A stretch of DNA of 60,433 bases, counting the filler, from Platydemus manokwari (taxonomy: Eukaryota): assembly GCA_037951405.1 (NCBI GenBank). It is 6 parts of 6 records of this genome, joined end to end, with 100 filler letters (N's around TTAATTAATTAA, not from the genome) between each part and the next. Parts side by side here need not be neighbours in the genome. Positions count along the whole stretch, not along the records: positions 51,181 to 60,433 come from JBBMOY011243318.1; 5 more parts are not named here. The stretch is one strand, 5' to 3'. Within the stretch, counting starts at the first letter, position 1. The number at the start of each line of letters is the position of its first letter. Below the pieces are notes generated by a model. The model was not told where the DNA came from. It saw only the letters and a list, made by a program, of their open reading frames with translations, and did no database searches. This document shows positions 51,081 to 60,433 of the stretch, piece by piece. The position numbers were made by a program, and so were the translations under genes.

Positions 51081-51313
51081 NNNNNNNNNNNNNNNNNNNN
51101 NNNNNNNNNNNNNNNNNNNNNNNNTTAATTAATTAANNNNNNNNNNNNNNNNNNNNNNNNNNNNNNNNNNNNNNNNNNNNAAAATTTCATTGAAATAATA
51201 GTTGTAAAAACCAATAATAATTATTTTAAAAGAATAGAATCATTTATTTAAATACTCATCACATGTGCCGTTTTGTAGTAGAAGTAGTGTGCTGAACTAG
51301 TAAATCAACGAAT

Positions 51314-52054
51314 TTACATTCTCACGAAAACGAATTCATTATAATGCTGCCATTTACTCTCTTCTGAATCTTGTCCAGGTCGATTGTCAGTGCCTGCAGA
51401 ATTAGTACCAGAACCGCAACATCCGATCATTTTATATCCACTCAAATACAGCGAATCAAAGGCTTGTTCAAGAATATTATGTTTGAGAAAAAATCTGGCA
51501 GAATAGCGATCTCCTTTCGTGCCGGCGTAGCCACAATCTGGATCTCTGCTCATGTTCAAAGTGTCTTGAAACACTTCCTTACAAGGTGCCACTTTACCAC
51601 TGACAAGAATTCGAGATAATTTTCTAAACTTTACATCGGCTAATCCATCCCGTCCAAAAGCAAAGGTTCCTCGATATCCCAACGTTATCACGGTAGGCCC
51701 ATTGTTCTTTATACGTTTCTCAAGATTGTCAACCATTTCATTGATACCAAAATAACTAGCTTCATTCTTTAATGCGGCAGTTTCACGAAATGTGTCAGGA
51801 AGATTAAATTTCTGTTCCTTGTTTTTTTTACTTCTTAAGTAATCCAAAATAAATCGAAAAAGTGATCCATTTCTATCAATGAATAGACGCTTATTGGAAT
51901 CAATCAATACTTCTGACGGTTGTTGGAGATACTGAGTGATTAGACCTGCTAATTTACTGCCTGGGAATTGATCGATTAATGTCGATTTAAAAGAAGCATA
52001 AATAACACCACCGACATTGAGCTCAATAACTTTCTCCTCTGAATTACTCGACAT
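51314..52054 (-). CDS. BTB/POZ protein of the KCTD8/12/16 family, intronless CDS
   Basis: T1-type BTB (VIELNVGG...FIDRNGSLFRFILDYLR...EASYF) plus H1 domain (ITLGYRGTFAFGRDGLADVKFRKLSRILV...SRDPD...RYSARFFLKH..LEQAFD...HYNEFVF). Confidence 0.93.
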   Translation of the reverse strand: MSSNSEEKVIELNVGGVIYASFKSTLIDQFPGSKLAGLITQYLQQPSEVLIDSNKRLFIDRNGSLFRFILDYLRSKKNKEQKFNLPDTFRETAALKNEASYFGINEMVDNLEKRIKNNGPTVITLGYRGTFAFGRDGLADVKFRKLSRILVSGKVAPCKEVFQDTLNMSRDPDCGYAGTKGDRYSARFFLKHNILEQAFDSLYLSGYKMIGCCGSGTNSAGTDNRPGQDSEESKWQHYNEFVFVRM

Positions 52055-52746
52055 CGTCTAGAAACTAAAATGGACTCAAAACTGGAGCAGTGAGAACAAT
52101 TTTAATAGGCGCTCTACCTGTATTTGTAGGGAAAGAAATTATCGAGTTATATCTCGCACACACAAACGCTACTAGAAATTTGTAGAACGCATTAAAGTAT
52201 AAGTCAAGGAAACTGTAATTATTCTTGAATCAATAATATTTATCATCAATCTCTCATGCTCAAGAATGCATTTAGTTTATTTTATATTTGCTGATGGTGA
52301 TGACGGTGTTTGTGATTGTAATGCTTTGGACGAGTTTTTTTACATAAAAAATATTATTGATAATTTCGATGGTCACAAAATTGTGTTGTGAAATTAAAGA
52401 GGAGCCCAAGAATTCCGATTTTATTGATCTGTAAATTACTAAGCTATTACAGATGCATGTTGGCAGCTCTTCTGGTATCGATTATTATTATATCGATAGC
52501 AACACACTAATGACAACGGAGTCTAAAATTTTAGCATGCATTAGACAGCACACTTTTAAATGGGATAATTATATGCAGGCACACATCTGGGTCGAAAATT
52601 CTTTACCTGTGTTTATCAGAATAAGAGCGACATATATATCAACAGTAGCTACACAGATCAGCATAATTTGATTAGCAGTTTTCAATTCTTTAAGTATAAA
52701 ATTTGATAAAAAAAAATAATATTCAATTTTTATCGTCTGTTCAGAC
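52055..52746. promoter_or_regulatory. Short divergent intergenic region between the KCTD gene and filamin
   Basis: Start codons are head-to-head about 690 bp apart on one contig. No specific motif identified. Confidence 0.4.
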
Positions 52747-55700
52747 ATGGATGATGGATACGTCGATGAAGTGGAAGAGCAGCCTGATGACAGCAGACCT
52801 GAAGAAAGAGATTTAGCTGAAGATGCTCAATGGAAGAAAATTCAAAAAAATACATTCACGCGTTGGTCGAATCAGCATTTGAAAAGTCAAGGCATTCAAA
52901 TCAATGATTTGCAATATGATTTGTCGGATGGCTTGAAACTAGTTGGTCTCATTCAGGCACTGGCATCATATCAATTCAAAAAAGTCAATAAAAGACCTTC
53001 ATTCAGAACACAGAAGTTAGAAAATGTGACAATGGTTCTAAAATTCTTGGAAGATAGTGAGCAGTTGCGACTTGTTAATATTGGTAAGTGGCAGTTTCAT
53101 TTTCAGTTAAGTGTTTCCTATGCTTGCAATAGCTATTTATGATCAAGGATAAATTACTCCTTGCCAATGACAATCACAACTAATGTTGTCAAATCTTAGA
53201 TAATTAGACCAGATCTTATTATCTGAATATTGTTTCCAGTTGAATTTTCTTTTATTTATGAGATTATTTATGATAAATCTTTGAAAATGATCTCATTGTT
53301 ATTGCGATCAATAATGTAAATAAATCTCGAGGCATTGTCTGGGATGAAAAATTTGCTTTAGGTAATGCGTAGGTGGCCACATGTGGGTGGTGAGTCTAGT
53401 GAAGTGTCACAAAATATTTACATCCATATTTTCTCTTAATTGATTCCATCATTTAGATCTAAATACTGAGATTAGACACAAGCTATTTATCATTTTAATT
53501 TTCAGATAGTTCTGACATTGTTGACTGCAGACTCAAGCTTATATTAGGCCTCATATGGACACTTATTTTGCACTACTCTATCTCGATGCCTCTCTGGGAA
53601 GGAGAGGACCCGATTGCAAAGGTAAAAAATTATCATTGATTGTTTATTCCTCATTTGATTATTTCTCTTTAGGACTCGAAAGGGAAAGGCCCATCACCAA
53701 AGCAGAGAATGTTATCCTGGCTCAACAGTAAAATGCCAGACAAGCCTGTTAAAAATCTCACAACTGACTGGAATAATGGAGTTGCAATCGGTGCTCTTGT
53801 AGATGCACTAGCACCAGGCTTATGTCCAGACTGGAGTGATTGGGATCCAAAAGATGCTCTGAAAAATGCAAAGGAAGCTATGGATTTAGCAGAGAAATGG
53901 CTTGATATTCCACAACTTGTGAAACCAGAGGAAATGATTGACCCAAGAATAGACGAGAAGGCCTTAATGACTTACCTGAGTCAATTTCCAAGAGCCAAAT
54001 TGAAAGACGGTGCACCTTTGCGACCAAGAACTAATCCTGCTAGGGTTCGAGCATATGGACCAGGATTAGAAAAAACCGGAAATGCAATAAACGCCCCAGC
54101 TAGATTTACTGTTGACGCTTTTAGTGCGGGATCAGGAAAATTGGAAATAGTAGTTTTAAATCCAAAAGGAGCATCCGAACCGGTAAGTGAAATTGATTGA
54201 GATAGTTTGACTGGTGTACATTTTCTACTTATTAATTGCATTTATATGATTTATTGGAATAATTATGGATTAATTGGTAGCACGTGTTGAAATACTCGTT
54301 TATATTTAAGTGCACCTGCGAACTCAAACCAAACCAAACTCAAATTTATTCCTGTACTTACACACCAACGATGCAAGGAGAGTATAGAGTGGTTATAAAA
54401 TATGCATCGAAAGAAATTCCAAACTCACCTTTTCAAGTTACAGTTGAAGGAACAGCTGGTGATCCAAACAAGGTTACAGCTTCAGGTCCTGGTATCGAGC
54501 TGAAAGGAAATGTAATGGGAAAGAGAACATTCTTTAATGTTCAACTGAATGGTGATTCGATAAATAATGCTTTCAATATTTATTCTCTCTCATCTTTTAT
54601 TCAGGAGCTGGCTTGGGCAATATCGAATGCAAAATAAAAGACCCTCAAAATCGTGAAGAAATTGTGAAGCCATTGATAACCAAACAATCGGATTCGGAAT
54701 ATCTTGTTGAATACACCCCAATTTTGTGTGGTCTTCATTCTGTAGCGGTCTTGTTTGCTGGTAGACCGATACCAAAATCCCCATACCAGGTCGATGTAGG
54801 AGCAGGTAGACAGTGTGTTTGATTATTTAGCTAAAACATATCGATGAAATTTTAGATTCTGGAAAAAAATCTACTGGTGAAATTACACCAAAATTAGAGC
54901 CCGGTAAATTGCTATTAGTTTTATCACAATTTAATAACGAGTCTCAATCAGCCAAGAAAACACATCCACTTGAAAGTTTACCAATTATGCAAGGCAACAA
55001 CGTAAAACCAGGGGGTATGGCACCCGATCTCACCAGTACACCGAAAAAGGGTAAAAAATAATTTTTTTAAAATTTTTATTTATGAATTTGTTTGACTAAA
55101 AAGATGTTTTCGCTGTTAAAAATGAATTTGGTTTTTCTTTTTAGTTTTCACAACTCTCAAATTCCAAAGTCGAATTTCATCGATAATATATAATCTGATT
55201 TGTCAGTAGTGTAAATAGGTAGTAAAGTATTTACCAGATATACACTGATTGGAAATACATTCATGATATTGATTGGAGTGCAAAGAAACAACATAACAAC
55301 ATGTAAGTAGGTGACATCAATAAGATAACCTACAAAATGAAAATAACAACCACAGAACATTCACTACAGATATTTAGTTCAAATGACACACACTAAATCG
55401 TATTGGGAGACAAGATATTAATAGGATAATATTCCGGTATTACCTTCAGTCATGTATTTAACAGATTTTGTAGCAAATTCAGAATGTGTTGACACGCTAA
55501 TGGACGGCATTTTNNNNNNNNNNNNNNNNNNNNNNNNNNNNNNNNNNNNNNNNNNNNNNNNNNNNNNNNNNNNNNNNNNNNNNNNNNNNNNNNNNNNNNN
55601 NNNNNNNNNNNNNNNNNNNNNNNNNNNNNNNNNNNNNNNNNNNNNNNNNNNNNNNNNNNNNNNNNNNNNNNNNNNNNNNNNNNNNNNNNNNNNNNNNNNN

Positions 55701-58700
55701 NNNNNNNNNNNNNNNNNNNNNNNNNNNNNNNNNNNNNNNNNNNNNNNNNNNNNNNNNNNNNNNNNNNNNNNNNNNNNNNNNNNNATTATAACTAATACGA
55801 CAAACATCTTAATATTCGTAACTCAATTAAGAAATCATCTCTCTAATAATAAAAGGAAGAAAATCAATTATTTTGTTAAAAAATTCACTTCGATCGTCTG
55901 ACTGTCAAAATATTTACAAAACACGATCCATTTGTTTTATTCGTAATTTTTATCGCATATATTTATCAAATATATTTTTCTCAGCCACACCTGAAGCCGT
56001 ATATGTAACTGGACGTGGAATACAACCGAAAGGACTGAGAGTTAATGAACCGACAGAATTCATTGTACATTGTGAGAAAGCTGGACCAGGAAAGGTGCAA
56101 GCAAAGGTTGTTGGGCCAGGTTATTCATCATTGAATATATATTTATTGATTTGCTGTTGTTGATCCAGGTGGGATAAATGAACAAGTTAAGATAACTCCA
56201 AAAGAAGATAACACATATTTATGCCAATATAAACCCACAAAAATAGGTCAATATGTTGTGATTGTGGAATATGGGACAACTCAAGTTCCAAAAAGTCCAT
56301 TCAAAGTAACTTGATTAACAAATATTCTTGATATAAAGAAAAACTTGTAGGTTGACGTTGCTGGACCATGCAAATCGAAAGTTATTGCTTATGGACCAGG
56401 TTTGAAATCCGGTGTGGTCAATTTTCCAGCACCATTCACTGTTGAATCTCATGGGTCACCTGGAGAATTAGGTATAATAATCAATCCAATTAAAATAATA
56501 ATTTATTATTTTAATCTCCTTAGGATTTGGTGTCGAAGGTCCAAGTGAAGCAAAGATTACTTGTAATGACAACGGTGATGGAAGTGCTGCAGTGCAGTAT
56601 CTCCCAACACTTCCCGGTGAATATGCAATCCATGTGCTATGTAACAAAGAAGATATTACTGGCTCTCCGTTCATAGCTCAGATTACCGAATTATCCAAAG
56701 CGAAATTCGACGCTACAAAGGTACATGAATAAAAATATTTTGAGTATTTCACTACATATCATATCCAGTCAATCATTAGTGCCTTGATTTAATATTAGCA
56801 TTGAATATTTTAAACTCGATTATAACACTAACATAACTGAACCAAGATGGATATGATTGATATAAATGATATCTGTTTCTATGATAATGTACCCAAGTTT
56901 TAACATATTTTAAACAGGTTAAAGCTTTTGGTCCTGGACTGGCTCCGACTGGAGTACAAATAAATAAAGAAACGAATTTCACAATCGATATCAAGAATGC
57001 TGGCGGTCCGGTTGAAGTAAAGACTTGGTGTATCGACGTAAATGGAAGCGAAATTCCTATAAAGATAACCGACAATAAAAATAGTACATTTACCTGTACT
57101 TATACCACTAAGATTGTTGGCAAACACACTATTTACATAACCTATGGCTCCATTGAAATTCCAGGAAGCGCTTATAAAGTAGATTTATTAAATTTGTAAA
57201 TATCGTATGATGGATTCCGATAGATTAATGTCTCTGGAGAATCAGCAAGCAGTGAGGTTACAGCCTCTGGTCCGGGTCTTGAATCTGGAACCATTGGAGT
57301 GCCAACAACATTCTCTATCAATGCCAAGAGTGTAATTAGAGAGATGAATTCAATCACTGTCGACATTACTACTGAAGATAACAAAAAAGTGCCTTTCCAA
57401 GTAAAAGACAAAGACGGTATCAGAGAAATACAATACACACCTACCGGTACCATTCAAACAAAATATACGATTCAAATAAAATTCAAAAACAAACCCATAA
57501 CCAATAGTCCGTTTATTGTTCCAATCTCTAAAAGTGTTAAAGGTTACAACGTGTTATTTTTTGAAAAATTATTTTAAACCGTGATTTTAGGTGCGGCTTA
57601 CGCTTCAGGGCGCGGAATTCAGCCAAAGGGTATTCGAGTGAACGATGATGTCTCATTCAATGTCCACACGGAAAATGCTCCTCCAAATGGTGTGACTAAA
57701 GCGAAATTAATCGGTCCAGGTAAAAGATAATAAATAGCTGATCTTATTAATTTTTCCAGGTGGAGTCCAGACTCCAGTGAACATAACCAAGGTTTCTGAG
57801 AAATTGTACAAATGCCAGTATCGACCAACAAAAGTAGGAAATTATGTTATCACAGTAGACTATGCAAACGCAGCGATTGCCGACAGCCCATTCAAGGTAC
57901 AAGTTGATGCCGAAAAGCAATCAAAAATCAAAGCTTATGGGCCTGGTTTAGAGAAAGCATTCGTCGGAGTACCAGCTCCATTTACAGTTGAAACAAACAA
58001 TGACACGAGCAAATTAGGTGGAATAAACTTAATATATTTAGATTTATATAGTTTTTGAAATGCTTTAGGATTTGCAATTAATGGTCCTAGTGAAGCTAAG
58101 ATAGACTGTAAGGATAATGGGGATGGTAGTGTATCCGTTCAGTATCTTCCAACTAAGCCAGGGGAATACGCTGTTCATGTTACTTCAAATGAGGAGGATA
58201 TACCCCGATCACCATTTATGGTGGTGGCATCAGAATTGAAAATGCCTTTACCGGATACAAGCAAAGTTGATGTCACAAATTAAATTCTAATTTTTTTACA
58301 ATTTTCTTAAATAGATTAAAGTATTCGGTCCAGGAATTGAACCACAAGGAAATGTTAGTGGGAAAGTTACCAGTTTTACAATTGATGCTAGAACATTTAA
58401 AGAGAAAAAGCCTATTGAGGTTACTTGTTTTAACAGTGATGGGGTTGTGGTTCCAGTTCAAATTGCTGAGAAACCTGATGGAACGTATACATGCACTTAC
58501 ACTCCTTTGACACCCAAAAAACATTTAGTTTATGTTTCATATGATAGTGTTGAAGTGACTAAAAGTCCTTACAAAGTATTGCAGAAACATTCCTATTACA
58601 TCCTAATATGTAAAATTTGCAGGTAAATGTTGGTCAGGGCAGAACAGGAACCGTGAAAACTAGTGGACCAGGATTAGAGAAAGCAACAGCTGGACAGTCG

Positions 58701-60395
58701 ACTTATTTCATTGTAGATATGACCGAAGTTGGATCTCAAACAACTGCTTTATCTGTAGATATCAAACTTAGTAAAGGCCAACCTGTTCCTTTCAGCTCCA
58801 AGGTGTTGAGACCAGGTGTCTGTGAAGTTTCTTACACTCCAGTAAACAAAACAGAAGATTTCTTGATAATCACCTTAAACTATGAATCAGAGCCTGTACC
58901 CGGTAGTCCTTATAAAGTTGTTACTAGTACCACTTCAGGTAAGATACCTTAATAGAATTAGAAGGAAAATTAACTACTGTAAGTAGAAATTTCAAGTGGT
59001 CGGGTTTATGTGACGGGGCGGGGAGTTGTACCAAATGGAATACGTACAAATGAAATTGTAAAATTTCAAGTTCATACAGAAAAGCCTCTCCCGAATGATA
59101 ACTTAAAAGTAAAAGTTGTTGGACCGGGTAAATGGAGGGATAAGAATACTATTTTAATTTAATGTAATTTGAAGGTGGAATCCAAATAAAAGTGGATACA
59201 AAGAAGATTTCGAACGACACTTATGAATGTCAATATAGTAGTTCAAAGGAGGGAAATCATGTTATCACAGTAGATTTCAATGGCAAACCAGCTGAAAAAA
59301 GTCCATTCAAGGTACGAATTCTGAAAGCATTAGTTAAACTTCTAATTACGGAATGTAGGTACAAATCACTCCACAAAAACCATCCAAGATCAAAGCATAT
59401 GGTCCAGGACTAGAAGGTGGCGTTGTTGGATTACCTGCTGTTTTCACAGTCAATCCTAATGGAGAAACATCGAAACTTGGTAAGAGAGCCAAAAAATTTT
59501 CTTTTATTAAACATTTTCCAGATTTCAAAATTGAGGGACCAAAGGAGGCAAAATTAACTTGCAAGGACAATGGTGATGGAACAGTTGGAGTTCAATATTT
59601 ACCAATCCAGAATGGTGAATACGCTGTTCATGTTTTATCTAATAACGAAGAGATTCCTCTTTCGCCATTCATGGTTGATATTACATTAGCTCCAGATAGC
59701 AGCACTCATCCTGAAAAAGTTAGTAATTGAGTGAGCATATCAACTGAAAATTTCTTCAGGTTAAAGCTTTTGGACCTGGATTGGAAACCCCTGGTGTTGT
59801 TGTTGGTAAACCAACACAGTTTACGGTGGATATCACAGAAGCAGGAACATTGAAACCTCTAGTTGTGAAATGTTACGACAGTGATGGAAATGTTTTGAAT
59901 ATTGAAACTAAGGTGGTATCTAATAAGGTATCAACCTATCACTATAAACCACAGAAAATTGGAAAACACACAGTTAGCGTTTCTTATGGCGGAGTTCCGA
60001 TTCCAAACAGTCCGTTTACGGTAAATAATTATAAAATTTATAATATGATTGTCGTGTGGTCATTCAGGTTAGTGTCGATCAACAAGAGACCAAAGAGGTT
60101 ACTGCATATGGTCCTGGATTAACCAATGCTGAATTGAATACGCCAACCAGTTTCATTGTCGATGCTACAGCAATTAATGGACCCACCAATAAGATTCAAC
60201 ATTCTATCGTTGATAATAAAAATCAAAAGTTACCAACCAAAGTTACAGATATAGCACCAGGGAAACAAGAGATCTCATATACTCCAACACAAACTGGAGT
60301 ATCCAATCTTAAAGTTAATGTATCATATGAAGGAAAGCCAATAAAAGGAAGTCCATTCACTATTCCAGTACAAGTTACAAAGAAAGATAAACATG
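52747..60395 (+). CDS. Filamin: two CH domains plus at least 14 Ig-like filamin repeats; continues beyond the window
   Basis: [59 protein letters not shown], repeated GPGL...FTV...Y.P...SPF motifs. More than 20 short GT-AG introns; scaffold gap at 55514-55784. Confidence 0.96.
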
Positions 60396-60433
60396 GTAAA
60401 AATATCCGAATTGATATGCATATTTATGTACTT

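Follow-up and report, generated by a model that had tools for sequence, protein, structure and literature searches.

Does the filamin gene of Platydemus manokwari (assembly GCA_037951405.1) encode an ordinary rod of immunoglobulin-like (Ig) repeats, or has this rod been lengthened by the copying of a whole block of repeats? The question is raised by the last part of a window of 60,433 nucleotides (nt), the whole stretch of DNA analysed here, in which six parts of the assembly are joined end to end. The readable piece that we examined (positions 51181–60433, from JBBMOY011243318.1; about 35% GC) carries on its plus strand a filamin gene that starts with an ATG at 52747 and continues with two CH domains, Ig1, Ig2 and three blocks of four repeats each. 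The vertebrate filamins FLNA, FLNB and FLNC have 24 Ig repeats. A preliminary description of this DNA, made from the sequence alone, proposed a filamin lengthened by block duplication. In our analysis, this piece very probably holds the 5' part of a filamin gene in which the Ig3–Ig6 segment was duplicated twice in tandem, the duplication being old and lineage-specific and the copies being under purifying selection.

Three four-repeat blocks in one reading frame

The filamin gene model consists of 22 GT-AG exons in a single open frame, and a filamin hidden Markov model (HMM) detects 14 repeats in its product. The 17 exons between 55985 and 60395 were placed by hand from the sequence, and their splice sites and frame were verified by script: all 17 have an AG acceptor and a GT donor, and the joined frame is open over 1171 amino acids. 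Alignments, HMM segmentation and trees used the joined spliced model, which was built locally from window coordinates; individual exons were the queries of all database and PDB searches. The blocks and the introns between them are as follows.

55985–57542, plus strand: block 1 (Ig3–Ig6), with exons 55985–56119 and 56169–56305 (Ig3), 56351–56471 and 56524–56720 (Ig4), 56918–57178 (Ig5), and 57224–57542 (Ig6)
57543–57590, plus strand: intron between blocks 1 and 2, 48 nt, phase 1, spanned by one Logan contig
57591–58938, plus strand: block 2 (Ig7–Ig10, copies of Ig3–Ig6), with exons 57591–57719, 57760–58017 (fused), 58069–58265, 58315–58575 and 58623–58938
58939–58986, plus strand: intron between blocks 2 and 3, 48 nt, phase 1, spanned by one Logan contig
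58987–60395, plus strand: block 3 (Ig11–Ig14, copies of Ig3–Ig6), with exons 58987–59127, 59175–59311, 59359–59479, 59522–59718, 59760–60020 and 60068–60395

The preliminary description had placed three blocks here, the start of the third only approximately, and these positions turned out to be exact. Exon lengths are 135, 137, 121, 197, 261 and 319 nt in block 1, 129, 258, 197, 261 and 316 nt in block 2, and 141, 137, 121, 197, 261 and 328 nt in block 3. The fused exon of block 2 (57760–58017) encodes the 3' half of the Ig3-type repeat together with the 5' half of the Ig4-type repeat and, since its 258 nt equal 137 plus 121 nt, block 2 is short of one intron. A protein alignment of the blocks shows that all five internal introns of blocks 1 and 3 agree in position and phase and that block 2 has four of the five, in keeping with the earlier statement that most intron positions are common to the blocks. 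All blocks have phase 1 at both ends, and their total lengths (1170, 1161 and 1185 nt) are multiples of 3. What is expected of a duplication at the level of the gene, namely cassettes that agree in the lengths of their exons and in the positions and phases of their introns, is therefore found here, with one intron of block 2 as the exception.

Pfam Filamin (PF00630) matches all block exons tested. The motif order that the preliminary description gave for the blocks recurs in all three of them: a GRG-type motif, an AYGPGL/GP.EAK-type motif, a VKAFGPG-type motif (VKAFGPG in blocks 1 and 3, IKVFGPG in block 2) and a fourth repeat. Its only inaccurate detail was the reading EAKI, which is EAKL in the third copy. 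In block 1, Ig4 and Ig5 are separated by an intron of 197 nt (56721–56917), and the remaining introns of the three blocks measure 40–52 nt. One of the latter, the 42-nt intron 59480–59521 inside repeat 12, is in frame and stop-free; its retention would add 14 residues and leave the frame unbroken.

The copies have diverged considerably, with block-to-block identities of 43–46% in protein and 52–54% in DNA. Between blocks, codon positions 1 and 2 are identical at 58–66% of sites and position 3 at 32–39%, and a DNA comparison of the three blocks revealed no long repeats common to them. Third positions are thus saturated, which makes the duplication an old one. Within the window, pairwise identity is 46–52% among repeats 3, 7 and 11, 59–71% among repeats 4, 8 and 12, 37–40% among repeats 5, 9 and 13, and 34–39% among repeats 6, 10 and 14, against a background of 20–30%. 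This periodicity goes well beyond chance: averaged over repeats 3–14, identity is 48% at a lag of four repeats and 46% at a lag of eight, and 25–28% at other lags; the same analysis gave no lag-4 peak in the filamins of fish, crinoid, oyster or cestode.

The Ig4-type repeat is the best conserved of the four, with 44% of its columns invariant across the three blocks versus 17–35% in the other repeat types. Its best-conserved stretch, EAK..C.DNGDG...VQYLP...GEYA.HV, which includes the C–D strand motif, is kept in every copy. In FLNA, the class A ligand-binding repeats are Ig4, 9, 12, 17, 19, 21 and 23, and it is the face formed by their C and D strands that binds β-strand peptides. Open frames, canonical splice sites and core motifs have been kept in all copies, which argues for purifying selection.

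Descent of the copies and competing explanations

The local model and 150 library proteins were segmented with the filamin-repeat HMM. A per-repeat maximum-likelihood tree was then built with IQ-TREE under LG+C20+F+G4 from 156 repeats of the window, fish, crinoid, oyster, cestode and three transcript open reading frames (ORFs); support is given below as ultrafast bootstrap/Shimodaira–Hasegawa-like approximate likelihood ratio test (SH-aLRT). Across the analysis, the references were Nothobranchius FLNC, an Antedon filamin-A-like protein, an Ostrea filamin-A-like protein, Branchiostoma FLNC, Schistocephalus and Fasciola, with names obtained via cluster look-up. Repeats 3, 7 and 11 form one clade (100/83) nested in an Ig3 clade of ten rows (99/97), and repeats 4, 8 and 12 form one clade (77/88) nested in the Ig4 clade (100/98), outside which the Ig9- and Ig12-type repeats of the references remain, joining it only one level deeper. 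Likewise, repeats 5, 9 and 13 fall within the Ig5 clade (91/89), and repeats 6, 10 and 14 form a clade of their own (91/79). Same-position repeats of successive blocks are accordingly grouped in one orthologous clade of other species. A four-repeat genomic segment, introns included, is present three times in tandem in one reading frame, and its copies descend from Ig3–Ig6.

The PDB searches point in the same direction. For the GRG exons of blocks 2 and 3, the only PDB match is the human FLNA Ig3–5 structure (4M9P) at chain residues 9–47, i.e. Ig3, with E-values of 5.7e-06 for block 2 (57593–57718) and 0.0059 for block 3. The Ig8 (58071–58265) and Ig12 exons match residues 136–198 of the same chain, which represent Ig4, at 5.4e-33 and 1.2e-30; the next different filamin chains are weaker by no less than 8 orders of magnitude (8e-25 and 4e-20, or worse). 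The Ig4-type copies also match FLNA Ig21 and Ig19–21 chains. Taken together, trees and PDB matches identify consecutive orthologues of Ig3, Ig4 and Ig5 in all three blocks. The long linker between Ig4 and Ig5 is kept in each block as well; it contains no proline in block 1 and two to three in blocks 2 and 3.

To place the blocks as units, the four repeats of each were concatenated and aligned with Ig3–6 of 18 other filamins (360 columns, 21 rows, site-heterogeneous model). The three blocks are monophyletic in this tree (96/95), with blocks 2 and 3 together (87/74), and their clade is sister to the long-branched cestode (82/62). Terminal branches of the blocks measure 0.81–0.88 and their stem 0.28. 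Filamin repeats 1–3 of the gene are placed close to the cestode and to environmental transcripts, at low support.

About 70 long filamins, comprising some 30 library proteins with classifiable repeats and some 40 loci from a metagenome scan (many of them full-length transcripts), were classed repeat by repeat according to the best-matching window repeat. In the canonical order, repeats 1 and 2 are followed by Ig3, Ig4, Ig5 and so on, with a single Ig3-type repeat. No more than one repeat of this type was found in fish, crinoid, amphioxus, oyster, cestode, fluke and about 40 metagenome or metatranscriptome loci, in line with what the preliminary description had said of canonical filamins. A repeated Ig3-4-5-6 order occurs in none of the roughly 70 classed filamins, which represent deuterostomes, molluscs, flatworms and environmental transcripts and do not include close relatives of the source organism. 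Together with the per-repeat tree and the monophyly of the concatenated blocks, this sustains the proposal of a lineage-specific block duplication. Among the scanned loci, 17 that were matched through the actin-binding domain (ABD), namely L001–L012, L014, L018, L022, L024 and L042, are intron-free single ORFs of 1100–2660 amino acids, evidently filamin transcripts of small eukaryotes or metazoans; loci of this series that have an Ig3-type repeat have exactly one each.

Some observations weigh against this interpretation. The Ig5-type copies do not form a clade of their own, since the cestode Ig5 falls among them with weak support, and the Ig6-type copies are linked to the reference Ig6 by their position and not by sequence. 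When repeats 7–14 were jointly constrained to pair with fish FLNC Ig7–14 (LG+G4, 100 rows), the constraint was rejected by the approximately unbiased (AU) test (205 log-likelihood units worse, p 1e-7), in favour of our interpretation, but both tree searches behind this test halted before full convergence, at about 150 iterations; the single pairing of repeat 7 with fish Ig7 was not rejected (difference in log-likelihood 28.9, AU p 0.117). The only N gap of the piece (55514–55784), which lies upstream of block 1, could conceal an exon. No public RNA run contains this sequence, and the sole run that holds it is not recorded as RNA. Finally, near relatives of the source are unsampled, and "lineage-specific" therefore has no defined depth.

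The condition that the preliminary description itself had named as fatal to its proposal was a one-to-one correspondence of the repeats with Ig3–Ig14 of a standard filamin. The period of four would then reflect ordinary, old internal similarity of the rod. Vertebrate rod 1 indeed has Ig4-like domains at positions 9 and 12 (PMC4170960). Moreover, repeat 12 is 51% identical to fish Ig9 and 49% to fish Ig4 (54 and 55% for repeat 8), and the single-pair AU test mentioned above is not significant. Against such a correspondence stand the rejection of the joint constraint, the inclusion of repeats 8 and 12 in an Ig4 clade from which the reference Ig9 and Ig12 are excluded, the similarity of repeats 7 and 11 to Ig3 alone, the single Ig3-type repeat and missing lag-4 peak of canonical filamins, and the identity of exon lengths and intron phases between blocks. 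The copies thus cluster as three sets of Ig3–6, and we regard a standard Ig3–Ig14 order as most improbable. A duplication of the Ig3–Ig6 segment that is much older than we propose, dating for example from an early protostome or spiralian ancestor and since lost widely, would turn the monophyly of the copies into a long-branch effect. The long terminal branches of the blocks relative to their stem would suit this scenario, as would the poorly supported grouping with the long-branched cestode and the Ig5-type copies, which are no more similar to each other (37–40%) than to oyster or fish Ig5 (37–49%). However, a second Ig3-type repeat in this arrangement was seen in none of about 70 filamins, many independent and exact losses of eight repeats would be needed, and the monophyly of the blocks was recovered under a site-heterogeneous model; so ancient an origin is quite unlikely.

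An error of assembly, with alleles or paralogous genes mis-stitched in tandem, has still less to recommend it. Contigs do fragment at the end of the piece, and there is the N gap upstream, but an independently built Logan contig of 4394 nt covers 55785–60133 with one mismatch, both block junctions included, and frame and splice phases are continuous through all junctions. With blocks that are only 52–54% identical in DNA and share no long repeats, there is nothing to confuse an assembler, and we give this explanation almost no credence. The alternative that deserves most attention, improbable as it is, treats the blocks as alternative cassettes, with transcripts that contain one, two or three of them and a usual rod of perhaps normal length. 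Symmetric phases and block lengths divisible by 3 would permit such splicing, and many filamin isoforms are annotated in other invertebrates, e.g. X12–X27 of oyster. Yet between the oyster isoforms listed the difference is a matter of tens of residues and not of some 390, and the introns between blocks resemble those within blocks in length and have no special features. We know of no precedent for mutually exclusive blocks of five to six exons. A tandem duplication whose three blocks enter one mRNA remains our preferred interpretation.

The upstream exons, the neighbouring gene and the end of the piece

The part of the filamin gene that precedes the blocks, and the point at which the piece breaks off, were assigned as follows.

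52747–53083, plus strand: exon 1, start codon and first part of CH1 (ABD); Pfam CH PF00307, E-value 5.8e-13 (on 52747–53139); GT donor at 53084
53506–53621, plus strand: exon 2, end of CH1 and linker; AG/GT sites, frame intact in the joined model
53673–54182, plus strand: exon 3, CH2 and first half of Ig1; Pfam CH 4.6e-18 (on 53673–54197), Filamin 1.5e-06
54311–54551, plus strand: exon 4, second half of Ig1 and first third of Ig2; Pfam Filamin 4.7e-16, with HMM matches
54605–54805, plus strand: exon 5, remainder of Ig2, ending in phase 1; HMM match 1.7e-16
54806–55984, plus strand: long intron (1179 nt) between Ig2 and block 1, containing the N gap
60396–60433, plus strand: start of the next phase-1 intron, GT donor at 60396; the gene is cut off at the end of the piece

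Both Pfam CH and the PDB matches identify filamin-type tandem CH domains at the N-terminus. The best PDB match of exon 3 is a filamin-B chain comprising ABD and Ig1 (4B7L, 4.9e-64), and the ABD matches that of filamin-A at 9e-47, with α-actinin far behind at 1e-14. Filamin/ABP280 repeats (PF00630) follow directly after the ABD and score above the gathering threshold on every exon tested. The phase-1 end of exon 5 fits the phase-1 start of block 1, and in the intron between them, as far as it can be read, the HMM detected nothing filamin-like on either strand. The piece ends at 60433, inside the intron after repeat 14, and thus short of the C-terminal rod, the hinge and the dimerisation repeat.

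The neighbour of the filamin gene is an intronless KCTD8/12/16-like gene with BTB and H1 domains (51314–52054, minus strand; Pfam H1_KCTD8_12_16 6e-50, BTB_2). The two genes are arranged head to head, with 692 nt between their start codons. The closest relatives of the KCTD-like protein are environmental (84–91% identity); its named matches, from insects, molluscs, annelids and Macrostomum, are 45–56% identical over most of its length, and there is no Trichoplax among the matches listed. The genome is compact and AT-rich, with introns of about 47 nt, and its source is a protostome.

Only one public run contains this DNA. In the same run, only short contigs cover the DNA from 60104 onwards, and their summed depth climbs from 16 to 25–35, so that the last repeat from 60104 on has about 1.5 to 2 times the depth of the sequence before it. 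In one contig, the sequence from 60104 on is preceded by a different 30-mer, which reads TEPQEVKGVT in frame before AYGPGL and was not found in the window. The sample therefore seems to contain another, nearly identical copy of the last repeat, which could belong to a further block, to a partner in gene conversion or to a divergent haplotype. In a word search, an environmental protein proved to be 78% identical to repeat 14, compared with 33–41% to repeats 6 and 10, and a second match was 61% identical to repeat 14. The first of these reveals a close homologue of that copy outside this assembly, which may be an orthologue from a related organism or one more copy. It is possible, although we are inclined to doubt it, that the array continues past the piece with more blocks, one or more of which are almost identical to block 3, and that it is still growing or being homogenised. 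Such a continuation would make the product a giant filamin in which both Ig3-4-5 modules and Ig4-type binding sites are numerous. Other, low-depth contigs match the gene only up to 55979, or only over 56492–56869 (the second Ig4 exon and part of the 197-nt intron), and then diverge, which indicates similar sequence elsewhere in the sample.

Growth of the filamin rod by cassettes

The canonical metazoan filamins in our library (those of fish, crinoid, oyster and cestode; P0002, an FLNC, P0005, P0003 and P0006, respectively) resemble this gene in their ABD of two CH domains, in the order Ig1–Ig6 and in recognisable orthologues of Ig1–5. They differ from it in having one Ig3-type repeat and Ig4-like repeats at positions 4, 9 and 12 (PMC4170960), whereas the P. 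manokwari gene has Ig3–6 three times and Ig4-type repeats at positions 4, 8 and 12. The most likely route to this arrangement would be two rounds of unequal crossing-over within the flanking phase-1 introns, each duplicating in tandem the Ig3-Ig4-Ig5-Ig6 segment with its five internal introns. These events would have taken place after the split from all sampled filamin-bearing lineages, long enough ago for synonymous sites to become saturated. Blocks 2 and 3 were possibly the last to separate, and block 2 would later have undergone a precise loss of one intron. With all three blocks in one mRNA, the protein would have at least 14 Ig repeats, a rod 1 that is eight domains longer, and a putative ligand-binding domain of Ig4 type at positions 4, 8 and 12, i.e. 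three sites instead of one.

Growth of this kind has been seen before. Light et al. (2012, as described in PMC8275333) attributed the lineage-specific expansion of Trichoplax adhaerens filamin to a cascade of multi-domain tandem duplications and that of the filamin of the leech Hirudo medicinalis to repeated single-domain duplications. To judge from that description, the Trichoplax case is the same type of event, in which neighbouring repeats were copied together in one lineage, the cassette being defined here as Ig3–6. The leech likewise gained repeats in its own lineage, but, according to the same source, by single domains, and not by a four-domain cassette copied with its introns. Several library proteins are also periodic: P0113, with 75 repeats, has a period of 5 at 86% identity; P0046 has a period of 6 at 57%; P0089 and P0132 have a period of 6 and the amphioxus filamin-A-like P0041 a period of 2; and P0127 and P0076 contain runs of single Ig3-like repeats with about 60% identity. 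Their periods and repeat types differ from those described here, and the Ig3-4-5-6 order is repeated in none of them. These periods show that filamin repeats are often duplicated as cassettes. With Trichoplax, the leech and these proteins, the type of event is already known, and no new principle is involved; what is particular to this gene is the Ig3–6 cassette, which combines a predicted compact module with a putative ligand-binding repeat and has left a clean record at the gene level.

In vertebrates, Ig3–5 are packed into a compact module of three domains, with Ig5 stabilising Ig4; Ig4, 9 and 12 are the rod-1 domains that resemble the ligand-binding domains of rod 2 (PMC4170960). The order Ig3, Ig4, Ig5 and the long Ig4–Ig5 linker of human FLNA (PDB 4M9P; 3V8O for FLNC) appear, as far as sequence can tell, in each block, and in place of the one Ig3–5 module of human FLNA three are predicted. 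The likely product would be a rod with three Ig3–5 modules, each followed by a fast-evolving spacer repeat. To our knowledge, Ig3–5 is the only compact, regulated unit in rod 1. The geometry of actin cross-links and the number of receptors held per molecule are set by the length of the rod and by how many ligand-binding Ig domains it has and how they are spaced. A natural filamin that would have three copies of Ig3–5 offers a test of this module as an independent, stackable unit. The gene is also a clean case, at the gene level, of the growth of a repeat protein through cassette duplication at symmetric phase-1 introns, as can be read from exons of identical length, intron phases common to the copies and the precise loss of one intron.

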